Shown here piece after piece: positions 11,391 to 38,574 of a DNA stretch of 64,000 nt (positions are counted from its first letter, which is position 1; every line of letters starts with the position of its first letter). The position numbers and the translations under genes were made by a program. Location of the stretch: sequence record PP496443.1; one strand, written 5' to 3'. The notes under the pieces were generated by a model. The model saw only the letters and a list, made by a program, of their open reading frames with translations, ran no database searches and was not told the origin of the DNA.

Positions 11391-11437
11391 GGTGTGGCTT
11401 CCTATTGGACAGTGGGGCGGCAGTGTGCCGCACGTGC

Positions 11438-11467: not shown

Positions 11468-11486
11468 CACCCGACCGACGCAGGTG

Positions 11487-11520
11487 AAAAAGCCCACGCA
11501 GCGGCTAGGCAGGTGGGCTT
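11487..11520 (-). terminator. Rho-independent terminator
   Basis: AAAAAGCCCAC...GTGGGCTT downstream of the gene ending at 11525. Confidence 0.75.
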
Positions 11521-11524
11521 GAGG

Positions 11525-14176: not shown

Positions 14177-14503
14177 TTACGGTTGGGTCAATGCAGATTC
14201 AAGTTTCTTGTAGCATGCTGCGACGATGCCTCTGGACATGCGGTCAGCCGCCCAAGAGTTTTGTAGCAGCAAGTGACTGTAGTGGAACAGATCACCTTGG
14301 AGCAACAAGTCGGACAGCTCCATCCGGTTGGCCAGATGAATAGAATAGTCCTCGTCTGCCAGATCCGCCACCTTCGGACCCCACGTGGCAATCACAGCAT
14401 CGAGATTGGTTGGAACGACGGCCAGTGTCAGCACCGTCTCTCCCTTCACAACACGCAGTCCCGCCAGCGTCTTGCTCACATACCGTTCAATGGTGATGCT
14501 CAT
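14177..14503 (-). CDS. Hypothetical protein
   Basis: Start re-placed at ATG 14503 (MSITIE), adjacent to the upstream stop. Confidence 0.6.
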   Translation of the reverse strand: MSITIERYVSKTLAGLRVVKGETVLTLAVVPTNLDAVIATWGPKVADLADEDYSIHLANRMELSDLLLQGDLFHYSHLLLQNSWAADRMSRGIVAACYKKLESALTQP

Positions 14504-14504
14504 A

Positions 14505-15134
14505 TCAGATGTCCGCAATGATCTTCAGGATGAACGAACGTGCTGCTTCGTTCAGTGTCTCGATACCCTCCAGTGCTTTCTTCTTGGCTGGCTTATACGG
14601 TGACAGACGTTGCTCGTCTACGTGTTCTATTGCACCGTCATAGTCGAAGTCGATGAACTCTGCTGACAGCAACCAATAGGCACACGCACGAGACGCAGCG
14701 AAGTGGAACTCCAAGAGTCCAGCAGGGTATTCTCTCATAACACCCTGACCCTCATCATCGTGAAGACAGTACAGAGTATTGTAATCTTTGGGGCCGCCGG
14801 TGGTGAACTGGAAGGTGCGTTCCCCGATGTCCATCTTTTCGAACTCGGCAAAATCTGCTTCGTTGAACGGCCAGTCAACGGCCTCGATGGATTGAACGAC
14901 GCCACCTATAGTCCAAGTATAGGTTATTATTGGCGAGTCACCCATCTTATTTATGCTGCCCTTGGAAACGGTCAGGACAGATACGTCTGGGTGCTGCATG
15001 GTCAGGAACAGGTTGCCGGTTTGCACATGAGACGGAACAAGTCCGATCTGCATGGCACGCTGATATTCGTGGCGGCAGTCCAACCTGATGTGCAGTTTCG
15101 GTTTGGGTTTGCGTACCGGGGCCTTAGGTGGCAT
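14505..15134 (-). CDS. Hypothetical protein (209 aa)
   Basis: ORF with GAGGA RBS and an upstream GTAAATG box. Confidence 0.7.
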   Translation of the reverse strand: MPPKAPVRKPKPKLHIRLDCRHEYQRAMQIGLVPSHVQTGNLFLTMQHPDVSVLTVSKGSINKMGDSPIITYTWTIGGVVQSIEAVDWPFNEADFAEFEKMDIGERTFQFTTGGPKDYNTLYCLHDDEGQGVMREYPAGLLEFHFAASRACAYWLLSAEFIDFDYDGAIEHVDEQRLSPYKPAKKKALEGIETLNEAARSFILKIIADI

Positions 15135-19748: not shown

Positions 19749-21227
19749 ATGAAATCTGTAGCCGTTGACTACCAAAAGATAGCCAAGGAATGCCAGTGTA
19801 CCGAGCTGCCTTCTAAGGTAAGAGTTACGCGTGCACGGGTCTATCCAAACTTGAGGACGTGTCTACTCTTCCTCAAGTACGATGCCAAAGGTGAACTGGT
19901 ACAAGCCGAGATCACTGCGCCGTACGACACGTCCACTGAGCCAAAGGTGAGGGTGCTCAAGCACCCGGATAAGAAGTCCGACTTCCTTTCATTATATAGA
20001 GCGCTGATCCGCCACCAGATCATACCCGAGTCTATTCCGAAGAAAGGTAACGGGATTGCACCAACGCTGGAGGTCATCGGCACACTGGTGAGCCTGCTGC
20101 CGGAACGGGATGTCGAAACCTTCCGTACGCTGACCCCGGCCATCCAGACGGGCAGCGTCATGTACGTCCCTCTGGTTACGTCCCGGCCAATGCCCATGGT
20201 GCAACACTGGATACCCGTTGACCAGCATTCAGAGCTGGGCATGATCGAGCTGGTCGATACGGATAGCAAGCCTTTCCTTAATCAGTGGGTCAACAGGTTG
20301 AGCAACACCGCCACCGGTTATGTGATCTACACCCCGGAAGGCTCACACGGTCAGGAACTCGCCTGCTTCCGGGTGCCCAATGTACAAGGGGAGGAACTGT
20401 GTGTGGTCAAGAAGGTTGACTTCACCCTGACTGTTGCTCGCACACTCAAGCCGGTACTGACTGTATCCACCAAGAGTACTCGGGCAGTGTCCCGCATTCC
20501 CCTACCCCACTATCTGATGCTGCGCAATCACCACATCAAGGTGGGCACGGTTATTTCCCTGCGTCGTAACGACCGAGGTGGGTTGGTGTACCATGAGACG
20601 GTGGCCGAGGAAGGCATGACGCCCCTGCCGCTGTGTCCACACTGCCACAGTGGTTCTGTGCTGCGAGGTAGTAGCAATGACGTGTACTGCAATAACGATT
20701 CATGCCGAGGCCTAGCCATTGTGCGACTTCGTTATGTCTTGAACAACAAGCTGGACGTCAAGTACCTGAGCGACAATAAGGTAACAGCGCTGATCAATGA
20801 CAAGCAGGACCTGTTCAGCTTGCTTAAGACACCGACGCACCAGTTACGGCACAGACCTGGCTTTGGTGCACGTACCGTGGACGCACTGGAGGAGAAGCTT
20901 AACACTATTGCCGGTCTTCCACTGCACACACTGGCCGAGATGTCCTGCGCTTTCTACAACGTGGGCGTGCCCCCACTGGATGAGATGGTGTTCAAGAAGA
21001 TCTTTTCCGTTATGTCGATTGACTACCTGAAAGCGCTGCCGTCTACCGGCAAGATGTACAGTCAGCTGCTCGACATCGAAGGTATCCGCAACAACCGCGC
21101 AGTGGCTTTCCTTGCCGGCTGGCCTGCATTTCAACAGTGGATGATAGACCTGAACGCTGCCCTACAGTCTCGTAGCGCAATCTCCTCCACGGTAAATAAC
21201 CCGAAACAAATTCGAGGTGTGAAATGA
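19749..21227 (+). CDS. Catalytically degenerate NAD-dependent DNA ligase (LigA) homolog
   Basis: OB-fold, Zn finger (CPHC...YCNNDSC) and HhH repeats (GFGARTVDAL, IEGIRNNRA) retained; adenylation motifs substituted (KxDG->PNLRT, EVRGE->EVIGT, DGVVIK->TGYVIY); no BRCT. Start re-placed at ATG 19749. Confidence 0.75.
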   Translation: MKSVAVDYQKIAKECQCTELPSKVRVTRARVYPNLRTCLLFLKYDAKGELVQAEITAPYDTSTEPKVRVLKHPDKKSDFLSLYRALIRHQIIPESIPKKGNGIAPTLEVIGTLVSLLPERDVETFRTLTPAIQTGSVMYVPLVTSRPMPMVQHWIPVDQHSELGMIELVDTDSKPFLNQWVNRLSNTATGYVIYTPEGSHGQELACFRVPNVQGEELCVVKKVDFTLTVARTLKPVLTVSTKSTRAVSRIPLPHYLMLRNHHIKVGTVISLRRNDRGGLVYHETVAEEGMTPLPLCPHCHSGSVLRGSSNDVYCNNDSCRGLAIVRLRYVLNNKLDVKYLSDNKVTALINDKQDLFSLLKTPTHQLRHRPGFGARTVDALEEKLNTIAGLPLHTLAEMSCAFYNVGVPPLDEMVFKKIFSVMSIDYLKALPSTGKMYSQLLDIEGIRNNRAVAFLAGWPAFQQWMIDLNAALQSRSAISSTVNNPKQIRGVK

Positions 21228-21988
21228 ACAATCAAAACAGAACTCGTATCGCTGTGCTTGTCGGCGGCGGTCTGGACTCACATGCGTACATGGTATTGAA
21301 AGCCGACCAGCCTCAGACAGACTTCATTCATGTGGACTACGGCCAGCGGGTTGCAGTAGCCGAGAGAAACGCCGTGTTGCAAATGGCTGAGAAGCTGGGC
21401 ATTGCCCGCAGCCGGGTGTACACGCTGATCTGCAACAAGAAGAATCACATGCGCAAGGTCAATGACGGTGTGGGTGTGTTGTTTGGCACCGGCCCGGTCG
21501 AGATGGACAATGCGTTTGTTAAGGGGCGTAACCTGTTCCTGATTCAGAAGGCCATCGAGCTGGGCTACGGTCACGTGCACTTGACGCTGACCCAAGAGCG
21601 TGGCCGGATGTTCCCCGATGCCGATCTGGCATTCGTCCAGCTGGTTGACAACCTGATGCACCGCAGTTATGACGTGAGGGTATCCGCCCCCTACATCATG
21701 GAAGACAAGCATCGGGTGATGTTCAAGGCGTATCGGCATTGCCCCGAGTTCCTCGATATGTCTTTCACGTGCTGGGTAGGTCCTTATGTGGAATGTGGCA
21801 CGTGCCCGCACTGCGTCAAGAAGGAAAAGATTCGAGCCGAGATGATCGTTGAGAAGATTGAATACGATCTCAGCAAGGATGAACGTGAGGCGCAGTGGGA
21901 GCAAGTCAAGGCAGGCTACGGCGACGCGTTGAAGCCCGCTGAGACCATCAACATGAACATTCAGGTTGTTGACGGGGAAATGAAATGA
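21224..21988 (+). CDS. queC: QueC-like ATP-pyrophosphatase (paralog 1)
   Basis: GGGLDS PP-loop, VDYGQR, FVKGRN, FPDAD, SFTCW...CGTCPHC zinc site. Confidence 0.8.
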   Translation: MNNQNRTRIAVLVGGGLDSHAYMVLKADQPQTDFIHVDYGQRVAVAERNAVLQMAEKLGIARSRVYTLICNKKNHMRKVNDGVGVLFGTGPVEMDNAFVKGRNLFLIQKAIELGYGHVHLTLTQERGRMFPDADLAFVQLVDNLMHRSYDVRVSAPYIMEDKHRVMFKAYRHCPEFLDMSFTCWVGPYVECGTCPHCVKKEKIRAEMIVEKIEYDLSKDEREAQWEQVKAGYGDALKPAETINMNIQVVDGEMK

Positions 21989-22746
21989 ACAAGTTCTTAT
22001 GTTGGTTCAATCGTCTGCTGGGTAAGGAGCAAAAGGCGGTAACGATGACAATGACCGACGCCAGTGGCAAGTTGGTCACCATTCATATACCTAAAGGTGC
22101 CGGGGTTGAGTACACCTTGTCGAAGTCGGGTGCCCACTTGAACGTCTCGGTCAAGGACGACATCTTCGTATTGAGCACGAACGGTGCTGGAGGCGGTGGG
22201 GGTGGCCGCGGTAGATCCAAACCTGGTGGCCCCGGCCATCCGCCCGTGCATCCGCGCCAAACCGTCCCAGTGGGTCCAGGCGCCCCGAACATGGGTTGCG
22301 CTGGGGACGCACCGAGTGGAGCAGGTGTAACGTCGCCAGTGGGCGCTCAAGCTTCGTTCCCTATCGGTGCCCGAGCCACTGTTTCTAGTGGTGGCCGCGT
22401 TGGTGGTCTGGCGGGTGACGGACGGGAACACAGAGAACTAGGAGGTGCACCCGGTCCCGGCGGAGATAGCTTCGTTCCCTCTCCAATCCGTAGTAGTGAC
22501 CGAGCCTATCGCATCCGCGGTCTGTACTACGTCATTACGACTCGAAAGCTTACAGGTGAGGAGTACCCGACCCACGAACTTCTGCACTGGGGCCTTCGAG
22601 ACATAGAACTCATGGGCAAGTTCTCAACGGTCCGTGAAGCTATCGACGAACTCAAGAGTAAGCTGGGTATCGTGTTAGACGATATTACGGACTATCAGGT
22701 TGACTCCATTCCCAAACGGATGTGCAAACCACCGCACAAATCTTGA
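21985..22746 (+). CDS. Gly/Pro-rich low-complexity protein
   Basis: 253 aa with GAGGGGGGRGRSKPGGPGHPP and further GP/GA repeats between folded termini; ATGA-coupled to QueC-1. Confidence 0.65.
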   Translation: MNKFLCWFNRLLGKEQKAVTMTMTDASGKLVTIHIPKGAGVEYTLSKSGAHLNVSVKDDIFVLSTNGAGGGGGGRGRSKPGGPGHPPVHPRQTVPVGPGAPNMGCAGDAPSGAGVTSPVGAQASFPIGARATVSSGGRVGGLAGDGREHRELGGAPGPGGDSFVPSPIRSSDRAYRIRGLYYVITTRKLTGEEYPTHELLHWGLRDIELMGKFSTVREAIDELKSKLGIVLDDITDYQVDSIPKRMCKPPHKS

Positions 22747-22750
22747 GCGG

Positions 22751-22757
22751 GTAAATG
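22751..22757 (+). promoter_or_regulatory. GTAAATR box
   Basis: GTAAATG, 28 bp before the QueC-2 start. Confidence 0.55.
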
Positions 22758-22784
22758 GCTCGCAACTAATCCGGAGACACTAGC

Positions 22785-23603
22785 ATGACCACTACACCCC
22801 CTAAGATTATCGTCGCATTCAGCGCTGGCACAGATTCAACCACAGCGGCCTATTACTATCGCAAGCTCGGGTATCAGGTTACGCTGGCTGTCTTCGATGA
22901 TGGCCCCTGCAACGATCCAAAGGATCCTCTGTACGATCCTAACAAGCCGGAAGATCTTACCAATTTCTCCGACGAGTTCTACGATTACGTACGAATCCAT
23001 CAAGAACACACTGAGGGTCACCTGCAGTTCGACTTTGTGGAGATCCGTTACCCACAGCTCCCGTTGTTGGAAGCCAACAAGACGGCTAAACCTGGTCGGG
23101 ACAACGCGGCGGCAGCCGAAGCTGACGGCTTGGGGTTCTGGGTAGGCTTCAAAGGTCTGATGGCGATGATGCTGATGAGCCACGGCGCGGCCAACGGTTA
23201 CGAGGCTGTAGTCTTCGGCCACATGCCGTACAACAACCATTACGAAGATGAGCTGCCGCAGAACTTCGAGCTGCTGCGCCAGTACATGGTTACGGCCTAT
23301 GGCAGCCGAGTGGAAATTCCTCAGATCTACCACCCGTTCTATCGACCGAATTTCGATACCAAGGAAAAGGTTATTGAGCTGGCGCAGGCAATCGGCGTGC
23401 CCTTGCGAGATACCTATTCGTGCCGCCGAGGTGAAGTAGAAACCCGAGGTATCCTATTGCCACTTCTGCGTGGTGGTAAATCCAACTACGTGAGCCCCAC
23501 CTACCGCTGGAAGCATTGTGGTACGTGTGAGAACTGTGTCGAACGCAAGCGAGCCTTCGCGGCGCTGGGCATGAAAGATCCTGCCCCTTATATGGAACAT
23601 TGA
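22785..23603 (+). CDS. QueC-like ATP-pyrophosphatase (paralog 2, divergent)
   Basis: AFSAGTDS PP-loop, TKEKVI, DTYSC...HCGTCENCVERKRAF...DPAPY; lacks the YGQ and PxRN motifs. Confidence 0.75.
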   Translation: MTTTPPKIIVAFSAGTDSTTAAYYYRKLGYQVTLAVFDDGPCNDPKDPLYDPNKPEDLTNFSDEFYDYVRIHQEHTEGHLQFDFVEIRYPQLPLLEANKTAKPGRDNAAAAEADGLGFWVGFKGLMAMMLMSHGAANGYEAVVFGHMPYNNHYEDELPQNFELLRQYMVTAYGSRVEIPQIYHPFYRPNFDTKEKVIELAQAIGVPLRDTYSCRRGEVETRGILLPLLRGGKSNYVSPTYRWKHCGTCENCVERKRAFAALGMKDPAPYMEH

Positions 23604-23604
23604 T

Positions 23605-24594
23605 ATGGCCCTTTCAACCTGGCCGCTGACCGAAGGTGAACTCGGTCAGGGCCTCGTCAACGAACTGAATCGTACCAGCAAGGCGCTGGTGAACCGGAGT
23701 ATGTGGTCTTTGCCATTGCTCCGGCGTTTGTTTTATCGGCGCACCGAGATTGGTGTCCCGGAGCTACTCCACGTCTGTACCAGCATTCATCGGGGCAAGA
23801 CTTACTTCTGCCTGTTGGTGAACTTCCGAGACGTGGTGATGGGCAATCCCGACCAGTATGGCTGGGATCTGGCGGGCCGCTGGTTGTTCTACGACGTTGA
23901 CCTGCTGGACACCCCGCCGTTCAAAGCGGTGAAGAAGTCCATTGAGTCCCGTGCCACCAAGACCGAAGTGTCGTACGGTCAGGCTTTCCTCCCTTACGAG
24001 AAGAGCGATGAGGAATACGTCAAGTCCCTCAAGGGCAACTACAAGCCCCACATCTTCGGCGAGAAGTCCAAGCAGTATCGCGTCTTATCGTACTTCGGGC
24101 TGGCAGCGGTAGCCCCCTTCGCTCAAGCTCTGATGTGCTTCGGCATTCAGCGCGCCGAAAGGTTTATGGCCGAAGGGCAGAACGATGTCCTCCCCGAGTT
24201 GTACGACCTGCCACTGCAACTGGCGGGGCTCGGCAATGTCTCGAACACCCGCATCGGCTGCGTGACCATTGAAGTAGAAGGTACGATGGTAGGTGCTATC
24301 AGCATGTATGCTCAAGGTGCACTGGGCGACGCGGACATGCTGTATCTGCACGAGATCCTCATCGACCCGGACCCCAAGTGGAAGAGCTTGTCGCTGGCTA
24401 CTCTGCTGCACATTCATGCCGTCCTGTACTATCGCCGATCCCTCCAGAAAGACATAGTGTTCAACCTGGGCTATAACTTCGCCGATGGGTATCAAGGTTA
24501 CAAGGATGTCTTCCGTCCCAACGCCAACGCCTTCAACGTGTACACCGAGATGGACACCGAGCCCGGCGTACCACTGTCCTGTTTCAAGGGGTAA
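23605..24594 (+). CDS. Fem/BioF2-type GNAT-fold transferase 1
   Basis: C-terminal VGAISM...LYLHEILID...SLATLL...FNLG...YQGYKDVF pattern of Fem-like GNATs. Confidence 0.6.
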   Translation: MALSTWPLTEGELGQGLVNELNRTSKALVNRSMWSLPLLRRLFYRRTEIGVPELLHVCTSIHRGKTYFCLLVNFRDVVMGNPDQYGWDLAGRWLFYDVDLLDTPPFKAVKKSIESRATKTEVSYGQAFLPYEKSDEEYVKSLKGNYKPHIFGEKSKQYRVLSYFGLAAVAPFAQALMCFGIQRAERFMAEGQNDVLPELYDLPLQLAGLGNVSNTRIGCVTIEVEGTMVGAISMYAQGALGDADMLYLHEILIDPDPKWKSLSLATLLHIHAVLYYRRSLQKDIVFNLGYNFADGYQGYKDVFRPNANAFNVYTEMDTEPGVPLSCFKG

Positions 24595-24597
24595 GAC

Positions 24598-25599
24598 ATG
24601 TACACTCCGTATTCCCAAAACAGCCTTATGCAGTCGATCCCTCTGGATGACCAAGGTACATTCGCCCATCCACCGTACACGATGGAAGGAGAGTTCACCG
24701 ACGTGTGGACGAATCCCAGCCTGTACGGGTTTGTTAGCTTGTTGAACGGTCAGAGCAATAGCCGGGCATATCGAGACTGGATGACCACCCACAATCTTCC
24801 AGCCCTGTTCCTCGGTCCGCACCATGAAGACAACTTCTGGTTTGAATTCAGCACTGGTCTCGATTCCAACTGCACGCTGGATTACAACGAGATCAACGTC
24901 CAAGGCAACCTGCAGGACTTCCTTGGGAGATTGACGTCATCTCGCCGTCGCTCCGTGCTCAAGGCAAAGGAAACGGATACAATGATCCACAAGGCAGGCT
25001 CGGTAGCCAACTTCAACCTGTATCATCCGGTAGAGGGTAGGCTGTATAGTCTGACCGTGATTCACGAACGCCGGGTGATGAAAGATATTTCCGAGTTTAT
25101 CGAATCGAAACTCTGGAGTATGAAGCATACGCCTACTGACCTCACGTACGGTGCATTCACCACTCTGATGGACTACATCCGGTTGAAGCAGCGAGATGAC
25201 ACGCCGCTGGGCCACCGGTTGCGCAACGTACAGCTCTTGATTATCCGAGATGAACGCTCCGGGTTTATCGTGTCGGTACACCTGGTGGCGATCAACACGT
25301 TGAAAGATGAGTCCATGAACCCCATCAAGACGTACATGCACTCCTTCGCACGCATCACTGTTCTCCCTGCACGTATCGCCTTACTTGCGTTGATCAAGGC
25401 GGTTCAAGAGTTAAACGTCACCAGTCAGTATGCGTCCCGTGCACTGGCGAAGATCGACTATCTTGATGTGAGCAACGTGGTGCTGTCCGAGCGAGAGCAG
25501 TACAAGTCGGACTTCTTCACCGGCAAATGCCAAGTGCGTGCGTGGGCATCCCCGGCGCTGCTGGAACGGCAGTTACCTTTCGTTACGCCGATCCCGTAA
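24598..25599 (+). CDS. Fem/BioF2-type GNAT-fold transferase 2
   Basis: LQDFLGRLTSSRRRSVLKA helix motif, FIVSVHLV strand, YLDVS...EQYKSDF terminal motif. Confidence 0.6.
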   Translation: MYTPYSQNSLMQSIPLDDQGTFAHPPYTMEGEFTDVWTNPSLYGFVSLLNGQSNSRAYRDWMTTHNLPALFLGPHHEDNFWFEFSTGLDSNCTLDYNEINVQGNLQDFLGRLTSSRRRSVLKAKETDTMIHKAGSVANFNLYHPVEGRLYSLTVIHERRVMKDISEFIESKLWSMKHTPTDLTYGAFTTLMDYIRLKQRDDTPLGHRLRNVQLLIIRDERSGFIVSVHLVAINTLKDESMNPIKTYMHSFARITVLPARIALLALIKAVQELNVTSQYASRALAKIDYLDVSNVVLSEREQYKSDFFTGKCQVRAWASPALLERQLPFVTPIP

Positions 25600-25603
25600 C
25601 TCT

Positions 25604-25610
25604 GTAAATG
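25604..25610 (+). promoter_or_regulatory. GTAAATR box followed by a start-codon-sequestering hairpin
   Basis: GTAAATG, then ATGGGAAC (25611-25618) complementary to GTTCCCAT (25648-25655), which covers the ATG at 25654. Confidence 0.55.
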
Positions 25611-25653
25611 ATGGGAACAGCCCCACCATCACTTCATCTCTAGGGTAGTTCCC

Positions 25654-26706
25654 ATGCAAGACTTCGATAAGATAATGATCGATAGTAGTTTGACATCCAA
25701 TCTGGTGTACGCAGGGTTGGGTAACTTGATCACGCCCCGCGCACTTGACCTGCTGATCGAACATCAGGCTGCACTGGAAAACGTATACGCCAATCTGGAA
25801 ACGGCCTATCAGATTACCCCACCCTTCCCCTGTGAAGCTGCATTCAATTCCCCTGACAAAGATCCTGTGCTGGTCGCCGACTATCTGAATGCTACTCCCG
25901 CCATCCGTTGCGGAGAGCTGGCTGGATTCGAGGCAAAGCCCGGCAGTTACTACCATGCGCCCGCCGCTGGTATCTCCCCGGAACATCGCATCGACGTACG
26001 TGGTATGTCTTTGCGTGAGTTCGACCACTATCTGGTTGAGCGTAAGGAGGTATCCCGTATCACTACCAATCTGGTGGCCGACAAGTTCCGCTGTGAGACG
26101 CATGTGTACAAAGTGGATGAAGATCATATCCTGATCCATGACGCCGAACGAGTTGGGATCAGCCAGACGGACTTCCGCCGCATGTGGGCGCAGACCCGCC
26201 GCCGGGAAATCGCTGAAAACTATCTGCAGTACATGCCCATCGAAGACTCCGCCAAGGATGATCAGGTGGTGCGCCTGATCAACGAAGACGTAGCACGGGT
26301 GTTCGCCCAGAACGTCGACTACGACCGCATGATTCCGCCCGAGCTGATCTTCGATGGTCAGGGCAAGCCGGTGCTGACCGTGCTGAAAGATTGCAACGCC
26401 AAGGTGTTGGGCATTGGTGTGTACGTCATCTACAAGTCAGCTGACCCAGAGAATGACAGCGAACTGCACTGGCGTGGCGCTTTCTACGATCACGAAGATC
26501 CTCGCGTAGCATCCATGGGCATTGAACACGCTCTGGTTGCCAGCGCACTGCATACAGCGTACGCCTGCAACGCGGTCCTCTATCTGACCAAGGCACCTAA
26601 GTCCGTGTGCGACGCATGGAAGACGGAAGTGCACCAAGGTTACGGTCTGGTCCGTAATGCGATGCCGGAACTGTCTGACACCCCTTACATTCTGGCTATC
26701 CAGTAA
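25654..26706 (+). CDS. GNAT-fold transferase-like protein 3
   Basis: VLGIGVYV...LHWRGAFYD...SMGIEHALVASALHTA...LYL...WK resembles the Fem-like GNAT C-terminal half. Confidence 0.5.
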   Translation: MQDFDKIMIDSSLTSNLVYAGLGNLITPRALDLLIEHQAALENVYANLETAYQITPPFPCEAAFNSPDKDPVLVADYLNATPAIRCGELAGFEAKPGSYYHAPAAGISPEHRIDVRGMSLREFDHYLVERKEVSRITTNLVADKFRCETHVYKVDEDHILIHDAERVGISQTDFRRMWAQTRRREIAENYLQYMPIEDSAKDDQVVRLINEDVARVFAQNVDYDRMIPPELIFDGQGKPVLTVLKDCNAKVLGIGVYVIYKSADPENDSELHWRGAFYDHEDPRVASMGIEHALVASALHTAYACNAVLYLTKAPKSVCDAWKTEVHQGYGLVRNAMPELSDTPYILAIQ

Positions 26707-26719
26707 ATAGCCGGTAACT
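26703..26719 (+). promoter_or_regulatory. GTAAATR box (extended copy)
   Basis: GTAAATAGCCGGTAACT, 16/17 identical to GTAAATAGCCGGTGACT at 55744. Confidence 0.6.
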
Positions 26720-26739
26720 CCATCCATTGAGGTACTTCC

Positions 26740-28824
26740 ATGAAATCCGTGAACCCCATCTTCAAGCACGTTCCCCAGTTCGACTGGCCTGTCATTCCCC
26801 GTGCGCAGTGGGAAGAGATCATCAAGGGAAAAGAGCATGTTATGTTCGACTCCTTCTCGCAGCTCGCTCAAGTGTTGGCTATCCCGGTGAGCAGTTACCA
26901 GTTCTACTTCGAAGATGGGTCCACGTTGTTCGCCGGTCCCGAAGCAACCTTCACCGCCGCGCCGTACCCGCTGTATCAGGACCTTGAATTCGTCCTGACC
27001 CCTGACGAGACGTTGGTACCGGGTCTTGCACTGGATACCAAACCGTGGGGCCTGTACACCGACGAATGGGTGGACAACTACGAAGGTGCGGACAAGGAAG
27101 ACATCGGCAACAAGACCGGGTTCGAATTCATTCCGCTGTCGGACGCCTTGAAACTGGTGGTCCTCAACACGGAGACCATGCAGCTCCAGTACACTGCCAT
27201 CGAGAGCTTCACGTACGACGGCGTGACTTACGTATACCTGCTGGCCGATGGCGTGTGCTGGGTACTGGCGGGCAAGTCCGGTGGTCTGGTTGCCAGCGAG
27301 CATGACAAAGGTGCTGCGTTCATCATGGTGTCCCATCCCGAGTTCGCCGGGTGCAGCGTAGACAACATGTACCCAAGTGAGTTCGGTGAAGCGGAAGCGA
27401 CGTTCTACGTTCAAGACGAGGAACACAATTACCTGGACGCGGCTAACCGCATCTTCGAGGAAGCCAAGGACGTAGGCGCTGGCACTTTCCTGACCATTGA
27501 GACCGGGGATGGACTGCCGACGGCACTGGCCTACAACCTGCGGTACAGTGACGTGGCCCACGTTAACCTGCCGATGCACAACATCCACCAGTTCACGTCT
27601 CTGCACGTACGACTGGGCGAGACGCCTAACTTCTCCGAGGCCCCGGAAGCGTGCCGTATGAAAGAGGTGATGGAGTATCTGGCGGACCCTGAGTCCCCGG
27701 TAGATCATTACTGGTCGGCCATCATGGTACTGGAGAAGAACTTCCCCGGTTTCGCCGACGCCCTGAAAGACTCCAGTGTCCCGACCCGTGACATCGTGCA
27801 CTCCAAACAGGCGTTCAGCTTGGAGATCGATCGCCAGTTCGGCAAGGAAGTGGCAAGCAAGATCGGCCTGAACACTGGCGTATTCGCCCAAGTGAAAGAC
27901 CGTGATGAGTGGCTGACCCGTCAAGACGATTTTCCTACCGACAAGGTGGCCGTTAAGTACAACACCAAACACTTCATCGGCATCTTCGACAAGGACGAGG
28001 TATCGAATTCCATCAACATGTGGCTGGCCGGTCAACCCGGAGAGTCGCTGATGATCGAAGAGTACTTCGGTGAGGGCAATCAGGAATTCAACCTGTGCTA
28101 TGTGATCAACGAAGAGTTCGTGCAGCCGACGCTGTTCCTGTGCGAAGTCAACAAGATCCTCGGTAATGACACCGGCGGCAAAGGTGGCAACACGCTGGCC
28201 TGCCATGATGCTCGTATTAACAAGTACCCTGAGTTCTTCGAGCCGGTCAATAATGCGCTTGCTAACCTGCATGAGCACGTGGAAGGTGTGAAGGGCTGGG
28301 TTGACCTGAGCTTCATGGTCCGCGACGGCATCCCTTACTTCACAGAGTGGTGCATTCGCATCGGCTGCTCCAACAACGCCACCATCGTGCGCCAGATGGA
28401 GACCCCGCTCGACGTTCTTTTGACTAACGTGGTTAACAAGGTGCATACCGAGCTGTCTTGGAAGCACTCCATGTCTGTTAGCGTGGACATCTACAGCATG
28501 CCGCTGTCCGCAGGCAATGATGCCAACATGCAGTTCACCGACTCGCTGACCACTCCGGTAGAGATGGTGTCCCCACTCAATCTGGAATTGGCAGCGGAGA
28601 GTTTCTTCGACCCGATTGATTCGGCCTGGAACGCGGTGTACGACGGCTACATTGTCGAGGCGTACAACCGATATGGCACCGTATCGGGGTATTCCACCAA
28701 CTGGAACTTCGCCTGCAATGCGGCGTACAATCACTTGAAAGATCAGTCGGTGTTGTACGGGGCATACCGCGAAGCGCCTGCCCACCACGACCCACTGACT
28801 CTGTTCCCTTTCCTCAAGGCGTAA
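26740..28824 (+). CDS. PurD-like ATP-grasp amide ligase with a long N-terminal extension
   Basis: EIDRQFGKEVASKIGLNT, VAVKYN, LMIEEYFGEGNQEF, NKILGNDTGGKGGNT, GWVDLSFM...FTEWCIRIG align with PurD ATP-grasp motifs; about 250 extra N-terminal aa. Confidence 0.75.
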   Translation: MKSVNPIFKHVPQFDWPVIPRAQWEEIIKGKEHVMFDSFSQLAQVLAIPVSSYQFYFEDGSTLFAGPEATFTAAPYPLYQDLEFVLTPDETLVPGLALDTKPWGLYTDEWVDNYEGADKEDIGNKTGFEFIPLSDALKLVVLNTETMQLQYTAIESFTYDGVTYVYLLADGVCWVLAGKSGGLVASEHDKGAAFIMVSHPEFAGCSVDNMYPSEFGEAEATFYVQDEEHNYLDAANRIFEEAKDVGAGTFLTIETGDGLPTALAYNLRYSDVAHVNLPMHNIHQFTSLHVRLGETPNFSEAPEACRMKEVMEYLADPESPVDHYWSAIMVLEKNFPGFADALKDSSVPTRDIVHSKQAFSLEIDRQFGKEVASKIGLNTGVFAQVKDRDEWLTRQDDFPTDKVAVKYNTKHFIGIFDKDEVSNSINMWLAGQPGESLMIEEYFGEGNQEFNLCYVINEEFVQPTLFLCEVNKILGNDTGGKGGNTLACHDARINKYPEFFEPVNNALANLHEHVEGVKGWVDLSFMVRDGIPYFTEWCIRIGCSNNATIVRQMETPLDVLLTNVVNKVHTELSWKHSMSVSVDIYSMPLSAGNDANMQFTDSLTTPVEMVSPLNLELAAESFFDPIDSAWNAVYDGYIVEAYNRYGTVSGYSTNWNFACNAAYNHLKDQSVLYGAYREAPAHHDPLTLFPFLKA

Positions 28825-28827
28825 TCC

Positions 28828-29991
28828 ATGAGCACTCCATTCCAAGAGTTCACCCTAGAAGGGTGGATTCGCTACATGAGAGATGAAAGCATCATCTGGC
28901 GCGCGTACGCTGATGGTCATCCGGATAAGGTCGAGTTCAGCCCGAAGTGGCGTGACGAGATGTATCGGTTGATGGTGCAGTTCAAAGATCTGCTGCCGAT
29001 GTCGTTTTCCAATCCGGTGTACGGCTTCACTGAAGGTTGGCTGGAAGGGCTCGGACTCCAGCCCTTTTATGGCGATGATCCGTTCAATCCGATGGTGCAA
29101 CCTCTTAGCCACCCTCTGGTGCATGTGGGGCTTCCGTTTACTCTGAGCGAGCTGACGGCGGGCGTATGGGACTGGCAGTCCCTGAGCGCGCACCTAGGGC
29201 GTCCGCTGCTGGTCGATACATTCGAACCGATCCCAGTGCCATCTATTAGCCTGGACGCTTACAAAGCCGTCCTGACCGTACGGGACCGGGAAGAGATCGT
29301 GATGAGTGCGGGAACCCCGGTGAACTACTTCCTCTGGTTGAATAGTCCGATCACCGAACTCAAAGACGACTTCGACGTTTATCTGGCCAGCCTGACGAAG
29401 AAGCGCCGCTACAAAGTGAAGCAGGCACTGGCGACAGTGGGCACCGAAGAGAACCCGGCTATCAGCGTCAGTACTGGATCTCGTTTCGGCGAAGGGTTGT
29501 TGTCCGATCAGGTGAACAGCATCCTCGCGACTTTCGAAGATCCGGTGGACATCGAGTGCATGCTTCTTCAGCTGCTGTTCGGGGTGGCAACCTGCAATAC
29601 CCATCCGCATCTTGTCGATCTGGTTTGTGCAGACCAGCAGTTGGGGATCTTCATCAAGCGTAACGGCCATACGATGAACTTCCTCTACAACCGTGACCCT
29701 GACAACCGCGCTGACTCAGGCATCAACCTGCTGACCCAGTACGTGCGCCATCTGCACATGAACCGCCCGGAAGGTGTGATGTACGTGGACCCGACATGTC
29801 GATATCGGCCTGACGAGGACAGTATGAACACCTACAAGCGGGTGATCACCAACGAGAACCGGTATCACCCAATGCCGTTCGTCTCGGCTGACCCTGCGCA
29901 TATCGAAGGTGTGATTACCCCGGCGTTCATTGCAGGTCATTGGCAGATGTCGGCGTCCAATGGCCCGGCCAATCCTGAGATGATGGAGTAA
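28828..29991 (+). CDS. Fem/BioF2-type GNAT-fold transferase 4
   Basis: DDFDVYLASLTKKRRYKVKQAL (typical BioF2/Fem motif), SGINLLTQYV, YVDPTC...TYKRVI. Confidence 0.65.
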   Translation: MSTPFQEFTLEGWIRYMRDESIIWRAYADGHPDKVEFSPKWRDEMYRLMVQFKDLLPMSFSNPVYGFTEGWLEGLGLQPFYGDDPFNPMVQPLSHPLVHVGLPFTLSELTAGVWDWQSLSAHLGRPLLVDTFEPIPVPSISLDAYKAVLTVRDREEIVMSAGTPVNYFLWLNSPITELKDDFDVYLASLTKKRRYKVKQALATVGTEENPAISVSTGSRFGEGLLSDQVNSILATFEDPVDIECMLLQLLFGVATCNTHPHLVDLVCADQQLGIFIKRNGHTMNFLYNRDPDNRADSGINLLTQYVRHLHMNRPEGVMYVDPTCRYRPDEDSMNTYKRVITNENRYHPMPFVSADPAHIEGVITPAFIAGHWQMSASNGPANPEMME

Positions 29992-29993
29992 CC

Positions 29994-30941
29994 ATGGCAA
30001 AGCACAAGGTCAAAAGGTTGGAAATCAACCACATCTACGACTTCTACCCGTTGTATCAGGTGATGTACGGGCGTGGCATGGAGACCAAAGCGTTCGAGGT
30101 CTCCAAGTTCGCCAAGATGGTGCTGGACTTCGAAGCATCAACCAGTACTCGCCGGAAGTGGGACGTGCTGGAACCTTTCAGCGGTATCAGCGAGCATGAA
30201 CACTTCTTCGCTGCTACTGGCCTGAACATCGAGCACTACACCGGCATGGACATCGTGGTTCCAGATGGGGCCAAAAACGTCATTCAAGGTGACATCATCA
30301 CCGACACCCTTCCGTTTCACGTCAACGCGGTGTTCGCCTTCTACTACAGCTTGCAGAATGTACGGGACGCCAAGACTGGCATGCACACGCGGGAAAAGCT
30401 GGTGGAGTTCTTCGACAACATCCTCGGCCATCTGCAAGTCAATGCGAACAAGAGCCGTATGCCCGCAGTGTTCGCTTTCCACCTTGACCAGCCTGAAGAC
30501 CCTAATTACTATCTGACGTCCCGTGCCGACGTTGGAGGTGAACAGTCATGGACCGCACCCGCGTGTGGTCTGCTGGGGCAGTGGGTCAAGTGCAAGCCTA
30601 CTGATACTCTGGAAGTGAAGTGCAATCTGGACACCTGGTACAACCGTGTGCAGTGCACCGCGTACGATCAGGCGGAGGATATCCAGATTCTGGTAAATGG
30701 GCGAGTAGTGGCTACCGTTGAGATCGAACAGCCGTTCACCCATCGGGTCTGGACCGAGCACGAGGTTATCGATATCCTGCGTGGTCTGGACTACAATCTG
30801 CACTTCCACATGTACAACGGCACCATCTCCAATTACGACTTCTTGATGACCCGTTTGGAAGACAAGCCCGTTCCCGGCGATGAAGAGGCTAATACTAATC
30901 AGATGACAACTGATATGCTGGTTGTCGTTAATCCGAGGTAA
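29994..30941 (+). CDS. Class I SAM-dependent methyltransferase-fold protein 1
   Basis: DVLEPFSG (motif I variant), YTGMDI, VIQGDI, VNAVFAFYYSL. Confidence 0.65.
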   Translation: MAKHKVKRLEINHIYDFYPLYQVMYGRGMETKAFEVSKFAKMVLDFEASTSTRRKWDVLEPFSGISEHEHFFAATGLNIEHYTGMDIVVPDGAKNVIQGDIITDTLPFHVNAVFAFYYSLQNVRDAKTGMHTREKLVEFFDNILGHLQVNANKSRMPAVFAFHLDQPEDPNYYLTSRADVGGEQSWTAPACGLLGQWVKCKPTDTLEVKCNLDTWYNRVQCTAYDQAEDIQILVNGRVVATVEIEQPFTHRVWTEHEVIDILRGLDYNLHFHMYNGTISNYDFLMTRLEDKPVPGDEEANTNQMTTDMLVVVNPR

Positions 30942-30943
30942 GA

Positions 30944-31861
30944 ATGGCTAAGCCCAAGATCCCTACACGAACCATCCCCACGTTGTACCAAGACTGGGGG
31001 TTGTACAGCGCCATCTGCGAACTGCCGCAGGAGACGATGCTGATGATGTCGCGCTTCGTGGCAGACCGGACTATAGAGCATGCTAATAGGCATGACATAG
31101 ATCGTGTGTCGATCATGGAACCTTTCAGTGGTCCTATCCCGTATTACGAACCTGATATCGACAGTTTCCTTACTAGAGCTGGCATAGGTTTAGACACGTA
31201 TGATCATGTGGAATACCTGGATCACGGCAAACTATCGGAAGACAACGGCATCATCATCGGTGACATCACCACCATCGATCTGAAGCAGAAGTACGACGTC
31301 ATCTACGGCAGTTACGGCAGCTTGGCCTGCCTGCTGCTGGATCAGACGCACAACAAAGCTTACGAGAAGTCGCACGCGGCGCTGGTCAACATCCGCAACC
31401 ACCTGAAACCCAACGGCATCTTCGTCCTGAACGCCAACGGATCCAGCGAAAGCCTGCTGAATAACCTGTTGAACTCCGATGAGCCGGATCAGGAGATTCG
31501 CGTCCGTCCGGGATCGCAGTTGGGTAAGGCGTTCCGAATCAAACCAGACAGTAACGCGCTGCTTCGCTTCACCTATCATGTGGAGTACGACCGGCGCACC
31601 ACCTGCACCATGTGCCACTACAGCGATATGGTGCTGTCTGTAAATGGAGTTGACATCCAGCGCTGGGAGGTGGAATCCCCGACGTATCTTGCGCCGCTGG
31701 ACGAACCCGAACTAATTCGAATGGCAGGTATGGCAGGTTTCAATCTGGACAACACTGAGTTTTACGGATTGGACACCACCGGTTATCCTGCCTTCTTCAA
31801 AATGGATACGGTCTGCGACGGGTCATGGTCACCCGCCGAGTTCGTAGTCTTTCGCACCTAA
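30944..31861 (+). CDS. Class I SAM-dependent methyltransferase-fold protein 2 (paralog)
   Basis: SIMEPFSG, IIIGDI, KYDVIYGSYGSL, NIRNHLKPNGIFVL. Confidence 0.75.
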   Translation: MAKPKIPTRTIPTLYQDWGLYSAICELPQETMLMMSRFVADRTIEHANRHDIDRVSIMEPFSGPIPYYEPDIDSFLTRAGIGLDTYDHVEYLDHGKLSEDNGIIIGDITTIDLKQKYDVIYGSYGSLACLLLDQTHNKAYEKSHAALVNIRNHLKPNGIFVLNANGSSESLLNNLLNSDEPDQEIRVRPGSQLGKAFRIKPDSNALLRFTYHVEYDRRTTCTMCHYSDMVLSVNGVDIQRWEVESPTYLAPLDEPELIRMAGMAGFNLDNTEFYGLDTTGYPAFFKMDTVCDGSWSPAEFVVFRT

Positions 31862-31871
31862 CGAGGTTACT

Positions 31872-33107
31872 ATGAGCGTTATCATCCCCACCGTAGCGAT
31901 GGAGAGTGGTCAGCCAGACATGATCATTCAAGGCTGTTCCACTGGTCGCGTCTCTATGGCCGAGCCTAACGAGAGCGCCAAACCTAAGTCTTCCAAGAAG
32001 CTGTACGAACGTGAAGACCTGATGGCGTACGACAGCGAGTCGGAGCACTGGCAGAAGCAGTTGGCCCGCCGCTACGCTCACCACGGTGAGATGGTCGGTG
32101 TGTTGAACAACGTCGAGGTGGTGCCGGAAGCCACCTATCAGAACTTCGACATGAAGATCACCCCGTACACCGCGCAGTTGATGGACCAGAACGACCCCAA
32201 CTGCCCGATCCGTTTGCAGTACATGCCGACCAACAAAGAGCTGGAGTCGATTCAGCGCGAAGAGACCATGCACAACGAGCTGGGCGAGGAAGAGGACACC
32301 ATCCCCGGTACCTCGGTCGTGCATCGCTACCCGCGTCGCGTCTTGTTCCTGACCACTACCCAATGCGCCAGCTTCTGCCGTTACTGCACCCGTGCACGCA
32401 TCGTCTCCCACGGCGGCGAAGCGGCGATCACCAAGAAGCACCTTGACGCCAGCATCGACTACATCGCCGGGAACAAGGACATCGAAGACGTGCTGCTGTC
32501 CGGCGGTGACCCGTTCATCCTCCCAGACAACAAGCTCGACGAGATCCTCGGTCGTATCCGTGCTGAAGCACCTCACGTTCGCTTCCTGCGTATTGGTAGC
32601 CGACTGCCGGTCCAGATGCCGACTCGTATCACTCCAGAGCTGTGCGAGATTCTGGAACGCCACAACGTCAACATGGTCAACATCCATGTGAACCACCCGA
32701 AAGAGGTTACCCCTCTGCTGGCCTCCCGGTTGAAGATGCTGCGTAAAGCGGGCGTCATGCTGGGCAATCAGGCGGTCCTGCTGAAAGGCGTGAACGACTC
32801 CATCGAGGTGATGACCGAGCTGTGCTTGCGCATGGTCGAGATGGGTGTGCGTCCGTACTACGTCTACTCCAACGATCCGGTTGCGCAGGCCGCACACTTC
32901 ACCGTCTCGCTCCGTGATATGCTGGACATCAACGAAGGCATGCGTGGCTTCCTGTCCGGCCCGGCAATGCCCACCTTCGTGGTGGATGGCGTCGGTGGCT
33001 TGGGCAAGATGCCCGTGCAGAAAGAGTACGTATCAATGCTGGGCAGTGGTAAGATCTGGGCCACCAACTTCGAAGGAATGACCACCCGCATGCCCCATCT
33101 GGAGTAA
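31872..33107 (+). CDS. kamA: KamA/EpmB-family radical SAM PLP-dependent aminomutase (lysine 2,3-aminomutase-like)
   Basis: HRYPRRVL, CASFCRYC (CxxxCxxC), LLSGGDP, RIGSRLPV, HVNHPKE, NQAVLLKGVND, PYY, PTFVVDGVGGLGK (PLP lysine). Confidence 0.93.
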   Translation: MSVIIPTVAMESGQPDMIIQGCSTGRVSMAEPNESAKPKSSKKLYEREDLMAYDSESEHWQKQLARRYAHHGEMVGVLNNVEVVPEATYQNFDMKITPYTAQLMDQNDPNCPIRLQYMPTNKELESIQREETMHNELGEEEDTIPGTSVVHRYPRRVLFLTTTQCASFCRYCTRARIVSHGGEAAITKKHLDASIDYIAGNKDIEDVLLSGGDPFILPDNKLDEILGRIRAEAPHVRFLRIGSRLPVQMPTRITPELCEILERHNVNMVNIHVNHPKEVTPLLASRLKMLRKAGVMLGNQAVLLKGVNDSIEVMTELCLRMVEMGVRPYYVYSNDPVAQAAHFTVSLRDMLDINEGMRGFLSGPAMPTFVVDGVGGLGKMPVQKEYVSMLGSGKIWATNFEGMTTRMPHLE

Positions 33108-33171
33108 GCGTTCCCAGACACTCCCTAGTTCCATTGTACAAGCTTCAAATGCCCCATTTGCGCTAGGTCCT

Positions 33172-33178
33172 GTAAATG
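33172..33178 (+). promoter_or_regulatory. GTAAATR box
   Basis: GTAAATG in the 3' arm of the CCCCATTT...AAATGGGG hairpin, upstream of 33259. Confidence 0.5.
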
Positions 33179-33258
33179 GGGTTGCTTATCAGCGTTGCAA
33201 TGTGTTACGCTGGATTGGACCCATTTTATTCCGATAACCGAAACCCCGAGGTATCACC

Positions 33259-37881: not shown

Positions 37882-38574
37882 ATGGCGAGCACGCTGGGCA
37901 TTAAAGAAGCACAAGACATACTGGGGCTGGAACCGGGCGCTGACCTTGCCGACGTCAAAAAGGCGGTGCGCAAGCTGTGCCAAAGGTTCCACCCGGACAA
38001 GGAAGGCGGTGACCCTGAGATGTTCCGACGTGTACGGGAAGCTGGGGAGTTGCTGGAGGAGATTCTGGCGGATCACGACATCATCCCGAATGAGGAATAC
38101 CTGGACGCGCTCAACTACGTCATCACCATGCTCGGCCAGAAGTACGTGGCGGCTGAGATGGACGGGATGAATGCCAGGCGTCGTGTCGCGATCAAGATGA
38201 CCAACGACGTTTTCAGCTTCCACAACCTGCAGCAAGCGGCCTTCGCAGCGGCAGCCCCGCCCAGTGCAGAGTCCTACGTGTTGAACGAACTCGAACAGGA
38301 GATCAAAGTCAACATCGATGAGTTCAATTCATCTATCGAACGGCACTCTGTTCAGGGTAAAGGGCTGCGCATGTTGATGCAAAACATGAAAGCGCCGAAG
38401 ATGGCCTACTCCGTGTGGCAAGACGCTCGGGATTCCTTGGCGCAGGCTATTCGCCAGCAACGCAACAACATCCGCATGGCGAAGATCCGGCTGCAAGCAC
38501 TGGAAGAGTTCGAAGCCATCCAGCACAAGCGCAAGCAGGAAGCCATTCGTCTGGCCCATGGGGTGCGCTCATGA
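37882..38574 (+). CDS. J-domain (DnaJ-like) co-chaperone
   Basis: AQDILGLEPGADLADVKKAVRKLCQRFHPDKEGGDPEMFRRVREA, with intact HPD motif. Confidence 0.9.
   Translation: MASTLGIKEAQDILGLEPGADLADVKKAVRKLCQRFHPDKEGGDPEMFRRVREAGELLEEILADHDIIPNEEYLDALNYVITMLGQKYVAAEMDGMNARRRVAIKMTNDVFSFHNLQQAAFAAAAPPSAESYVLNELEQEIKVNIDEFNSSIERHSVQGKGLRMLMQNMKAPKMAYSVWQDARDSLAQAIRQQRNNIRMAKIRLQALEEFEAIQHKRKQEAIRLAHGVRS

Follow-up and report, generated by a model that had tools for sequence, protein, structure and literature searches.

A KamA-family aminomutase gene closes a ligase and transferase operon in Pseudomonas phage vB_PpuM-Lauda: a possible supplier of beta-lysine for 7-deazaguanine hypermodification of DNA

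We analyzed the final 64 kb of the genome of Pseudomonas phage vB_PpuM-Lauda (hereafter Lauda; PP496443.1). This whole stretch is referred to as the window, and a window position becomes a record position by adding 137030. Lauda is a lytic myovirus of 201 kb, and thus a jumbo phage, that infects Pseudomonas putida and belongs to the Estonian CEPEST collection, in which the phages of the Lauda group are cultured on P. putida KT2440/PaW85, a safe laboratory host; the same region occurs in eight sister phages with a DNA identity of 88-96%. Our subject is the gene Lauda_00195, labeled only "hypothetical protein" in the record, which very probably encodes an L-lysine 2,3-aminomutase of catabolic ancestry and which stands at the end of an operon for putative ligases and transferases. 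The explanation that best accounts for the locus as a whole, and to which we give an even chance of being correct, is that the enzyme supplies beta-lysine for an amino-acid-bearing 7-deazaguanine hypermodification of DNA.

The aminomutase gene, its residues and its ancestry

31872-33107, +, predicted KamA-family L-lysine 2,3-aminomutase (Lauda_00195); TIGR00238, alignment to 2A5H, bacterial relatives

Lauda_00195 is a single open reading frame (ORF) that occupies exactly these positions, encodes 411 amino acids (aa) and begins with an ATG preceded by GAGG, the ribosome-binding site. Its product passes the cut-off of the KamA family model TIGR00238 (271.1 bits, cut-off 199.2) and contains the domains Radical_SAM (PF04055, 44.2 bits, cut-off 29.5), LAM_C (PF12544, 39.1 bits, cut-off 26.7) and Fer4_12, which bears out an earlier reading of this DNA made from its letters alone (hereafter the preliminary description), according to which the phage carries a complete KamA-family aminomutase. 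That reading had also called the radical S-adenosylmethionine (SAM) and pyridoxal 5'-phosphate (PLP) motifs intact, and all of them aligned to catalytic residues of the lysine 2,3-aminomutase of Clostridium subterminale (2A5H; E 3.8e-80 over 318 residues). The [4Fe-4S]/SAM cysteines are kept (C165-ASF-C169-RY-C172, corresponding to C125, C129 and C132 of 2A5H), as is the lysine that forms the Schiff base with PLP (K379 in GGLGK, corresponding to K337), which is invariant in 34 of the 34 sequences compared. Further, the lysine-binding residues R134, D293 and D330 of 2A5H, of which we take the first to hold the carboxylate of the substrate and the other two its epsilon-ammonium group, are present as R174, D335 and D372. 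C125, C129, C132, R134, D293, D330 and K337 are retained in every phage and proteobacterial homologue that we examined.

The phage enzyme differs from 2A5H in its zinc site and at its termini. Ser310 stands at the position of Cys268, a C-terminal Cys-rich domain is lacking, the end of the protein corresponds to about residue 369 of 2A5H, and a nonconserved extension of ~45 aa precedes the aligned part. We note that Cys268 is missing and the C terminus is short in the whole proteobacterial KamA clade and in all phage copies. Because the whole proteobacterial clade is also without it, the zinc site is, on this comparison, not a defining feature of lysine 2,3-aminomutase activity. The C terminus is thus as short as the preliminary description had stated, but the resemblance to EpmB that it drew from this did not hold: because bacterial relatives and phage copies alike lack Cys268 and the C-terminal domain, the short C terminus is, as judged from the sequences, a trait of the proteobacterial KamA clade and has no link to EpmB. 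A phylogenetic check, which had been proposed against several families, was made for EpmB and the proteobacterial KamA clade and separated the two, with the phage copies nested in the latter and EpmB split off with 99/99 support. Two true EpmB genes, each located beside efp, sit on a long separate branch, and the EpmB sequences carry Glu at the position of D330. In this tree, the bacterial rows L067 and L078 were mis-extracted and form an artefactual long branch, and L080 was excluded as truncated. EpmB (YjeK) thus has its superfamily, its chemistry and its short C terminus in common with the phage KamA, but differs from it in sequence (~30% identity), clade, the residue at D330 and the efp neighborhood.

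The best database relatives of Lauda_00195 are proteobacterial "KamA family" proteins of ~393 aa with 59-67% identity. In Undibacterium, kamA heads the order kamA-kdd-orf-kamD-kamE-thioesterase-kce, a classical lysine-fermentation operon. We surveyed the neighborhoods of the best 80 homologue loci in 185,579 species genomes (one genome per species) and found that kdd adjoins kamA in 75 of the 80 (at 55-62% identity) and that kamD, kamE and kce do so too in 61-67 of the 80; the loci without the lysine-fermentation genes lie mostly on short contigs. Four bacterial copies have no lysine-fermentation neighbor at all, namely those of Lysobacter, two Bradyrhizobium and a short Shewanella contig. The copy of Lysobacter niastensis (L003/L018) is the bacterial one closest to the phage enzyme (66% identity) and is without kdd, kamDE and kce, with a lysyl-oxidase gene and a TetR regulator nearby; the two Bradyrhizobium copies (L092, L094) are likewise without the operon. 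Compared with the lysine-fermentation enzymes of Undibacterium, Rhodoferax and Aromatoleum, the phage copy is alike from end to end (55-62% identity), belongs to the same length class (~390 aa), and shares with them the short C terminus, the absence of the zinc ligand Cys268 and all catalytic and lysine-binding residues. Unlike them, it has no downstream catabolic genes and no AsnC regulator and sits behind ligases and transferases.

The catabolic partners appear to have been left behind. kamD and kce were not found in the four searchable phage genomes (Lauda, GR7B, G001 and G002), and the phages likewise have no kdd or kamE. An EpmA-like ligase, which the preliminary description had not seen, is also missing on a wider view, for there is no EpmA-type (tRNA-synt_2) gene anywhere in the Lauda genome or, in the second genome tested, in GR7B. 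In the host P. putida, elongation factor P (EF-P) is activated by EarP, which rhamnosylates Arg32, and not by beta-lysylation (PMC5615199). We infer the aminomutase activity from the comparisons above, in which the kept lysine-binding residues and the membership of a catabolic kamA clade at 55-67% identity narrow the substrate to L-lysine. It is similarly very probable, from the same sequence comparisons, that the enzyme works on free lysine and that the phage keeps the gene solely for its product, beta-lysine.

Conservation of the aminomutase beside an ATP-grasp ligase

KamA lies no more than 3.5 kb from a homologous PurD-like ATP-grasp ligase in six phage lineages: Lauda, the Vibrio phages GR7B/GR11A, the IMG/VR jumbo-phage contigs L007, L008 and L009, and L103, an 18-kb metagenomic phage scaffold. 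The IMG/VR relatives of KamA were found with an alignment as query, a single-protein query having matched none. Among 50,697 phage records, a KamA of the Lauda type and the ATP-grasp ligase matched the identical 11 isolates, and genes like Lauda_00192 and Lauda_00193 (the genes Lauda_00186 to Lauda_00195 are hereafter g186 to g195) accompany the pair in several lineages. The preliminary description had proposed that the enzyme provides a beta-amino acid for the product of the cluster, and it is this conserved synteny in six lineages, together with the shared set of 11 isolates, that supports such a supply. We consider it probable that the product of KamA feeds the ligases of the operon.

The surroundings of KamA vary. 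In GR7B/GR11A, a small GNAT (PF00583) directly follows KamA in an arrangement like that of AblA/AblB, and a SET-domain gene is nearby; in L009, a SET-domain gene (9415-9843) directly precedes KamA. The ORF right after KamA in L008 (11123-12538) contains an intein splicing domain (PF14890, E 3e-14), and the three extra genes of the Vibrio cluster (an ArcS2-type DUF5591 gene, the small GNAT and the SET-domain gene) lie in GR11A (L106) at 6335-7297, 14385-14852 and 1132-1542. With the AblA/AblB system, which makes the osmolyte N-epsilon-acetyl-beta-lysine, Lauda_00195 has in common that AblA is its best-scoring NCBIfam model, and GR7B/GR11A have the GNAT right after KamA; it differs in that its score is under the cut-off of 525, no small AblB-type GNAT is present in the Lauda operon, and the context is DNA metabolism.

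Partner enzymes and the 7-deazaguanine gene set

The Lauda operon comprises 12 genes on the plus strand (19749-33107) with intergenic distances of -4 to 54 bp. KamA, as gene 12, is the last, which agrees with the earlier proposal that it closes a GNAT/ATP-grasp operon; the GNAT and ATP-grasp members are the Fem-like tandem GNATs and the PurD-like ligase listed here.

19749-21227, +, LigA-like protein, first gene of the operon (Lauda_00184); weak match to the OB/HhH part of DNA ligase 8ak4, E 0.01
21224-21988, +, QueC-like PP-loop ATPase 1 (Lauda_00185); PF06508, 68.6 bits, cut-off 22
21985-22746, +, 253-aa protein between the QueC genes (Lauda_00186); no family match
22785-23603, +, divergent QueC-like PP-loop ATPase 2 (Lauda_00187); PF06508, 47.5 bits
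23605-24594, +, Fem/Acetyltransf_6-like protein (Lauda_00188); Protein Atlas neighbors
24598-25599, +, 333-aa protein, possibly Fem-like (Lauda_00189); no family match
25654-26706, +, 350-aa protein with a weak GNAT-like signal (Lauda_00190); Atlas structural neighbors
26740-28824, +, PurD-like ATP-grasp ligase of 694 aa (Lauda_00191); family profile, C-terminal 450 residues PurD-like
28828-29991, +, Fem/MprF/Sbb17-like tandem-GNAT protein (Lauda_00192); AlphaFold2 (AF2) model, Foldseek
29994-30941, +, class I SAM methyltransferase-like protein (Lauda_00193); family profile against the PDB
30944-31861, +, class I SAM methyltransferase-like paralogue (Lauda_00194); PF13847, E 0.033, and paralogy
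33152-33181, +, possible operon terminator; inverted repeat CCCCATTT-14 nt-AAATGGGG then TTGCTTAT, read from the sequence

The operon is preceded by a divergent helicase gene, lies within a block of replication genes and adjoins the topoisomerase II genes, right after which (37882-38574) a 230-aa protein with an N-terminal DnaJ (J) domain is encoded. KamA is followed by a 151-bp spacer with a hairpin of an 8-bp stem. A scan of the locus for consensus promoters and terminators performed no better than on shuffled sequences and missed the hairpin at 33152-33181 because its loop exceeds 8 nt. For 8 of the 12 operon proteins, searches of Pfam, NCBIfam and PHROGs gave no match.

The most constant partner of KamA is g191, the candidate beta-lysine ligase. 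The family profile (A5) matched glycinamide ribonucleotide synthetases (2xcl, E 1.4e-19 over ~330 residues), and the ATP-grasp Lys/Glu/Asp/Arg columns are invariant in the family; a word-indexed homologue search with this ligase returned 3 proteins only. An extra N-terminal domain of ~240 aa was modeled by AF2 with a predicted local distance difference test (pLDDT) value below 50 over residues 1-229, too poor for a fold search. The gene that follows, g192, probably encodes an aminoacyl-tRNA-dependent aminoacyl transferase, as suggested by its AF2 model (pLDDT 88), for which the top Foldseek matches were Sbb17/Sba18, FemX and MprF (E 8e-7 to 1e-5). Its VIA Z scores were 10-11.6 for 23 aminoacyl-tRNA-dependent transferases (including Sbb17/Sba18, FemX, FemA and MprF) and at most 9.1 for acyl-CoA GNATs. 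The g192 family is rare (74 matches in 1.84 billion representatives); PF13480 (Acetyltransf_6) was reached by 5 of 64 family members, and the family profile gave only chance matches to neuroglobins among the PDB sequences. For g188, the nearest named clusters in the Protein Atlas were Mig-14/Acetyltransf_6/FemX (template modeling (TM) score 0.63-0.65 over ~270 residues), and a Pfam search gave no match. In hhalign comparisons of the g192 family with g188, g189 and g190, none was significant, and a notion of four Fem paralogues is supported for two genes only, g188 and g192. The methyltransferase-like proteins g193 and g194 are paralogues (E 5e-8), and the sole PDB matches of their profile, all weak, were SAM methyltransferases (1y8c at E 0.023, 3bxo and 1wzn); homologues of g193 are present in L103, L105, L107 and L007.

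The head of the operon points to DNA and to deazaguanine chemistry. Lauda_00184 is probably a DNA-binding protein, judging from its sequence, and its GR7B/GR11A counterpart carries OB_DNA_ligase. Lauda_00185 retains the PP-loop motif GGxDS and the C...CGxCxxC cluster. In Lauda_00187 (QueC2), the PP-loop and the Cys cluster are intact and family-specific inserts are present; its nearest outside relatives are the QueC halves of Gat-QueC archaeosine synthases, and we regard it, from its sequence, as a candidate amine-coupling enzyme. Between the two QueC genes, Lauda_00186 has no detectable similarity to the ArcS2-like gene of GR7B, nor has the 318-aa gene that separates the QueC genes of L008. 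The remainder of the 7-deazaguanine set is encoded elsewhere in the genome.

55790-56761, +, QueE-like radical SAM protein (Lauda_00229); record annotation QueE-like, Fer4_12 33.6 bits
58730-59470, +, GTP cyclohydrolase I FolE, first step of 7-deazaguanine synthesis (Lauda_00233); PF01227, 134 bits, cut-off 27
PP496443.1 80652-82022 (L012:10653-12023), -, DpdA-like tRNA-guanine transglycosylase (TGT) protein (Lauda_00102); PF01702, 32.9 bits, cut-off 26.3

Lauda_00102, annotated as hypothetical, has the zinc motif CxCxxC, and a QueD-like PTPS domain was found in Lauda_00017 (33.3 bits, cut-off 22.4). A DpdA-like homologue, FolE and exactly two adjacent QueC genes occur in four of the four searchable genomes. 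G001 has them in the contiguous order FolE-DUF7487-DpdA-QueC-x-QueC-Fem-ATP-grasp-x-x-KamA; in G002, QueE, DpdA and the QueC pair lie 7-12 kb from KamA; and in GR7B/GR11A, an ArcS2-type DUF5591 gene with a PC-x3-KPY motif stands just before the QueC pair, a gene that is absent from Lauda, G001 and G002. Phage ArcS2 together with DpdA makes dG+ in DNA (PMC10516641). Because of this link between the cluster and a full 7-deazaguanine/DpdA gene set, DNA is, on this genomic evidence, the likely final acceptor. Further, the DNA of the G3 jumbo phages, to which the Lauda group belongs, gave an extremely low yield with a standard phage DNA kit, so that other silica columns were needed (PMC7616413), an anecdotal observation that is compatible with unusual DNA. 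The phages of this group are also restricted more than 1000-fold by cryptic prophages of their host (PMC7616413).

Several further observations concern these genes. The DpdA-like family comprises only ~20 records, all from jumbo phages of 195-260 kb: the Pseudomonas Lauda group, Vibrio GR7B/GR11A, Xanthomonas PhiXhv-12/15/16 and Ep026, Erwinia Ep032, phage NCTB, Achromobacter Motura and Burkholderia BCSR5. The gene adjoins a phage sigma factor in Lauda and PhiXhv-15. DUF7487 proteins are encoded beside the DpdA-like gene in L008 (442-1548) and beside the topoisomerase genes in L009 (969-2534), the place taken in Lauda and GR7B by the LigA-like protein. The QueE-like and FolE genes of Lauda belong to a second deazaguanine block (55790-60061) that also has three ORFs between them (114, 408 and 129 aa), which are without Pfam matches and may include further pathway enzymes, and a 193-aa ORF after FolE.

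Proposed pathway, competing explanations and significance

We propose the following pathway, in which the order of the steps, the linkage chemistry and the DNA target are what we infer from the gene content. The Lauda_00195 lineage would derive from a kamA that headed proteobacterial lysine-fermentation operons, the phage having kept the gene without the downstream catabolic genes. FolE, QueD, QueE and QueC1 would make 7-carboxy-7-deazaguanine (CDG) and 7-cyano-7-deazaguanine (preQ0), and the DpdA-like enzyme would exchange guanine in DNA for the deazaguanine. KamA would convert free L-lysine to (3S)-beta-lysine, a building block for the operon enzymes, and QueC2 (ArcS2 in the Vibrio phages) would couple an amine to the C7 carboxyl or nitrile group, either as an amide from 7-carboxy-7-deazaguanine or as an amidine from preQ0, as ArcS does with lysine on tRNA. 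The PurD-like ligase would then join an amino-acid carboxylate to an amine in a further amide, the Fem-like enzymes would add residues from aminoacyl-tRNAs, and the methyltransferases would cap amines, to give a cationic amino-acid or peptidyl hypermodification that would shield the DNA from host nucleases. Whether the end product is indeed a 7-deazaguanine derivative in DNA is, in our judgment, evenly balanced. More tentatively, the guanines in the DNA of these jumbo phages may be replaced by a 7-deazaguanine whose side chain is an amino acid or short peptide containing beta-lysine, and a similarly tentative proposal is that this side chain is built by QueC/ArcS-type coupling, the PurD-like ligase, the aminoacyl-tRNA-dependent Fem-like transferases and the N-methyltransferases.

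The chemistry has a precedent in archaea. ArcS attaches lysine through an amino group to the nitrile of preQ0, which makes a lysine-type adduct on a deazaguanine chemically plausible; in the ArcS/RaSEA route to archaeosine in tRNA, this adduct is a transient intermediate. The proposed pathway resembles that route in coupling a lysine-type amine to the C7 nitrile and in the DUF5591/ArcS core gene of the GR7B cluster, and differs from it in that the beta-lysine adduct would be elaborated further and kept, on DNA, and in that Lauda is without DUF5591. The known phage 7-deazaguanine systems (DpdA with FolE/QueD/QueE/QueC, Gat-QueC or ArcS2) share with Lauda the DpdA-like TGT, FolE, QueD-like, QueE-like and QueC proteins, all of which it encodes; the eight derivatives described from them (dPreQ0, dADG, dG+ and others) need no aminomutase, ATP-grasp ligase or Fem-like transferase. 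The two key papers on phage 7-deazaguanines make no mention of aminomutases, lysine or ATP-grasp enzymes, and a literature search returned no paper that connects phage DNA modification with an aminomutase or beta-lysine and none that names this phage. The gene adds a new member to a known enzyme family, and the pathway appears to be a new form of deazaguanine modification system; should the tRNA-dependent peptidyl decoration be real, its chemistry might be categorically new.

Several observations weigh against this proposal. First, Lauda_00195 is below every equivalog cut-off, including that of TIGR03820 (AblA; 319.3 bits, cut-off 525.4), against which the bacterial copies of the kamA clade were not scored, and the phage KamAs are not clearly monophyletic in the tree. 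Second, we know of no precedent for PurD-like or Fem-like enzymes acting on DNA, and two of the operon assignments are weak: g189 is called Fem-like from a short motif likeness to the g192 family (LT..RR..V.KA, hhalign E 0.11), and the GNAT hint for g190 comes from a poor Atlas model (pLDDT 0.39) with GNAT-family neighbors at TM 0.32-0.37. Third, the searchable phage genomes have no QueF, so that the amine handle of 7-aminomethyl-7-deazaguanine (preQ1) is missing; an acceptor role for the preQ1 amine in the ATP-grasp reaction, which we had considered, is thus unlikely. Fourth, in Lauda, the DpdA-like gene lies ~76 kb upstream and FolE and QueE 22-26 kb downstream, all outside the operon, so the genomic link to DNA rests on the QueC pair and on the other phages. 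Finally, KamA and its partners can be found apart. The metagenomic phage contig L107 has the order QueC-QueC-Fem-x-ATP-grasp-Fem-methyltransferase (g193-like) at 3772-11564 without KamA, and in two huge uncultured phages, no homologue of the ATP-grasp, QueC or DpdA lies within 12 kb of KamA. This distribution suggests that KamA is an exchangeable gene supplying a precursor to a conserved ligase module. In L107, a 2-oxoglutarate-Fe(II) oxygenase gene follows, which may represent a different choice of amino-acid tailoring. The two huge phages, LR756500 (L099 11983-13131) and LR756501 (L100 11887-12927), have genomes of 462 and 735 kb, and their KamAs, at 33-36% identity, keep all key residues.

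The strongest competitor, which we nevertheless hold to be improbable, is that the same ligases build beta-lysine into a free small molecule during infection, such as a peptidyl 7-deazapurine nucleoside or a streptothricin-like compound. Peptidyl-nucleoside and streptothricin pathways typically involve beta-lysine, ATP-grasp ligases and N-methyltransferases, the streptothricin ones drawing their beta-lysine from a KamA-type enzyme, and deazapurine nucleoside antibiotics are likewise made with the help of preQ0 genes. In structure, g192 comes closest to Sbb17 and Sba18, themselves Fem-like enzymes of streptothricin-type antibiotic pathways, and the best of these matches belongs to the tRNA-dependent glycyl transfer of streptothricin/BD-12 synthesis (Orf11/Sbb17). 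However, the latter is a Streptomyces small-molecule pathway with nonribosomal peptide synthetase parts and an amino-sugar acceptor, none of which is seen here. A free product is also difficult to reconcile with a DpdA-like transglycosylase in every searchable genome, inside the cluster in G001, and with an operon that is headed by a LigA-like protein and lies in a replication block next to the topoisomerase II genes; genes for an exporter or for self-resistance were not seen.

Less probable still, we consider it unlikely that the pathway decorates RNA, as a hypermodified deazaguanine in tRNA, or protein, as a beta-lysyl or peptidyl mark on the virion or the host. TGT and ArcS act on tRNA in cells, where ArcS is said, in work by Yokogawa et al. 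in 2019, to attach lysine to preQ0-tRNA, and the EF-P system attaches beta-lysine to a protein. The phage TGT homologues tested so far, however, act on DNA (PMC10516641), and no PUA or other RNA-binding domain was detected. A protein mark of the EF-P kind is opposed by the lack of an EpmA-type ligase and by the rhamnosylation of the host protein by EarP at Arg32 (PMC5615199).

An equally unlikely variant is that a different basic amino acid (arginine or ornithine) or carrier-bound lysine is the substrate of this 2,3-aminomutase, so that the building block is not free beta-lysine. Lauda_00195 scores alike with the AblA, glutamate and arginine models (319, 302 and 290 bits) and is below the cut-off of each, as it is for EpmB (TIGR03821, 222.9 bits, cut-off 369.3; glutamate 2,3-aminomutase TIGR04368, 302 bits, cut-off 650; arginine 2,3-aminomutase TIGR04468, 289.8 bits, cut-off 600). 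However, R134, D293 and D330, which hold the carboxylate and epsilon-ammonium groups of free lysine in 2A5H, are all kept, and the enzymes at 55-67% identity are embedded in lysine-fermentation operons. Glutamate aminomutases reportedly have both aspartates (D293/D330) replaced, by Lys/Asn (Ruzicka and Frey, 2007); both are kept in Lauda_00195. Least credible is a stand-alone auxiliary metabolic gene unrelated to its neighbors (an EpmB substitute, lysine catabolism or synthesis of the N-epsilon-acetyl-beta-lysine osmolyte), for which speak the catabolic kamA ancestors and the small GNAT of GR7B/GR11A that directly follows KamA as ablB follows ablA, but against which stand the absence of kdd, kamD, kamE, kce and EpmA from the phages, a host that does not use beta-lysyl-EF-P, a Lauda operon without an AblB-like small GNAT and a KamA/ATP-grasp linkage that is strict across six lineages.

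Overall, we favor the supply of beta-lysine to a DNA-directed deazaguanine pathway. The C7 groups of the phage 7-deazaguanine modifications known so far are all small, namely nitrile, amide, amidine, and aminomethyl with its methyl and formyl forms. With a beta-amino-acid supplier, an ATP-grasp ligase and tRNA-dependent aminoacyl transferases added, the DpdA/QueC toolkit would allow a much larger, positively charged appendage on DNA. If this is true, it would be the first DNA base modification to use the product of a radical-SAM aminomutase and the first with charged tRNAs as building-block donors, and it would widen natural DNA chemistry and offer new anti-restriction and anti-CRISPR strategies as well as enzymes for site-specific DNA labeling. 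The phage kamA stands as a clear example of a catabolic gene that was captured by a virus and, as we read it, repurposed as a biosynthetic supply gene.

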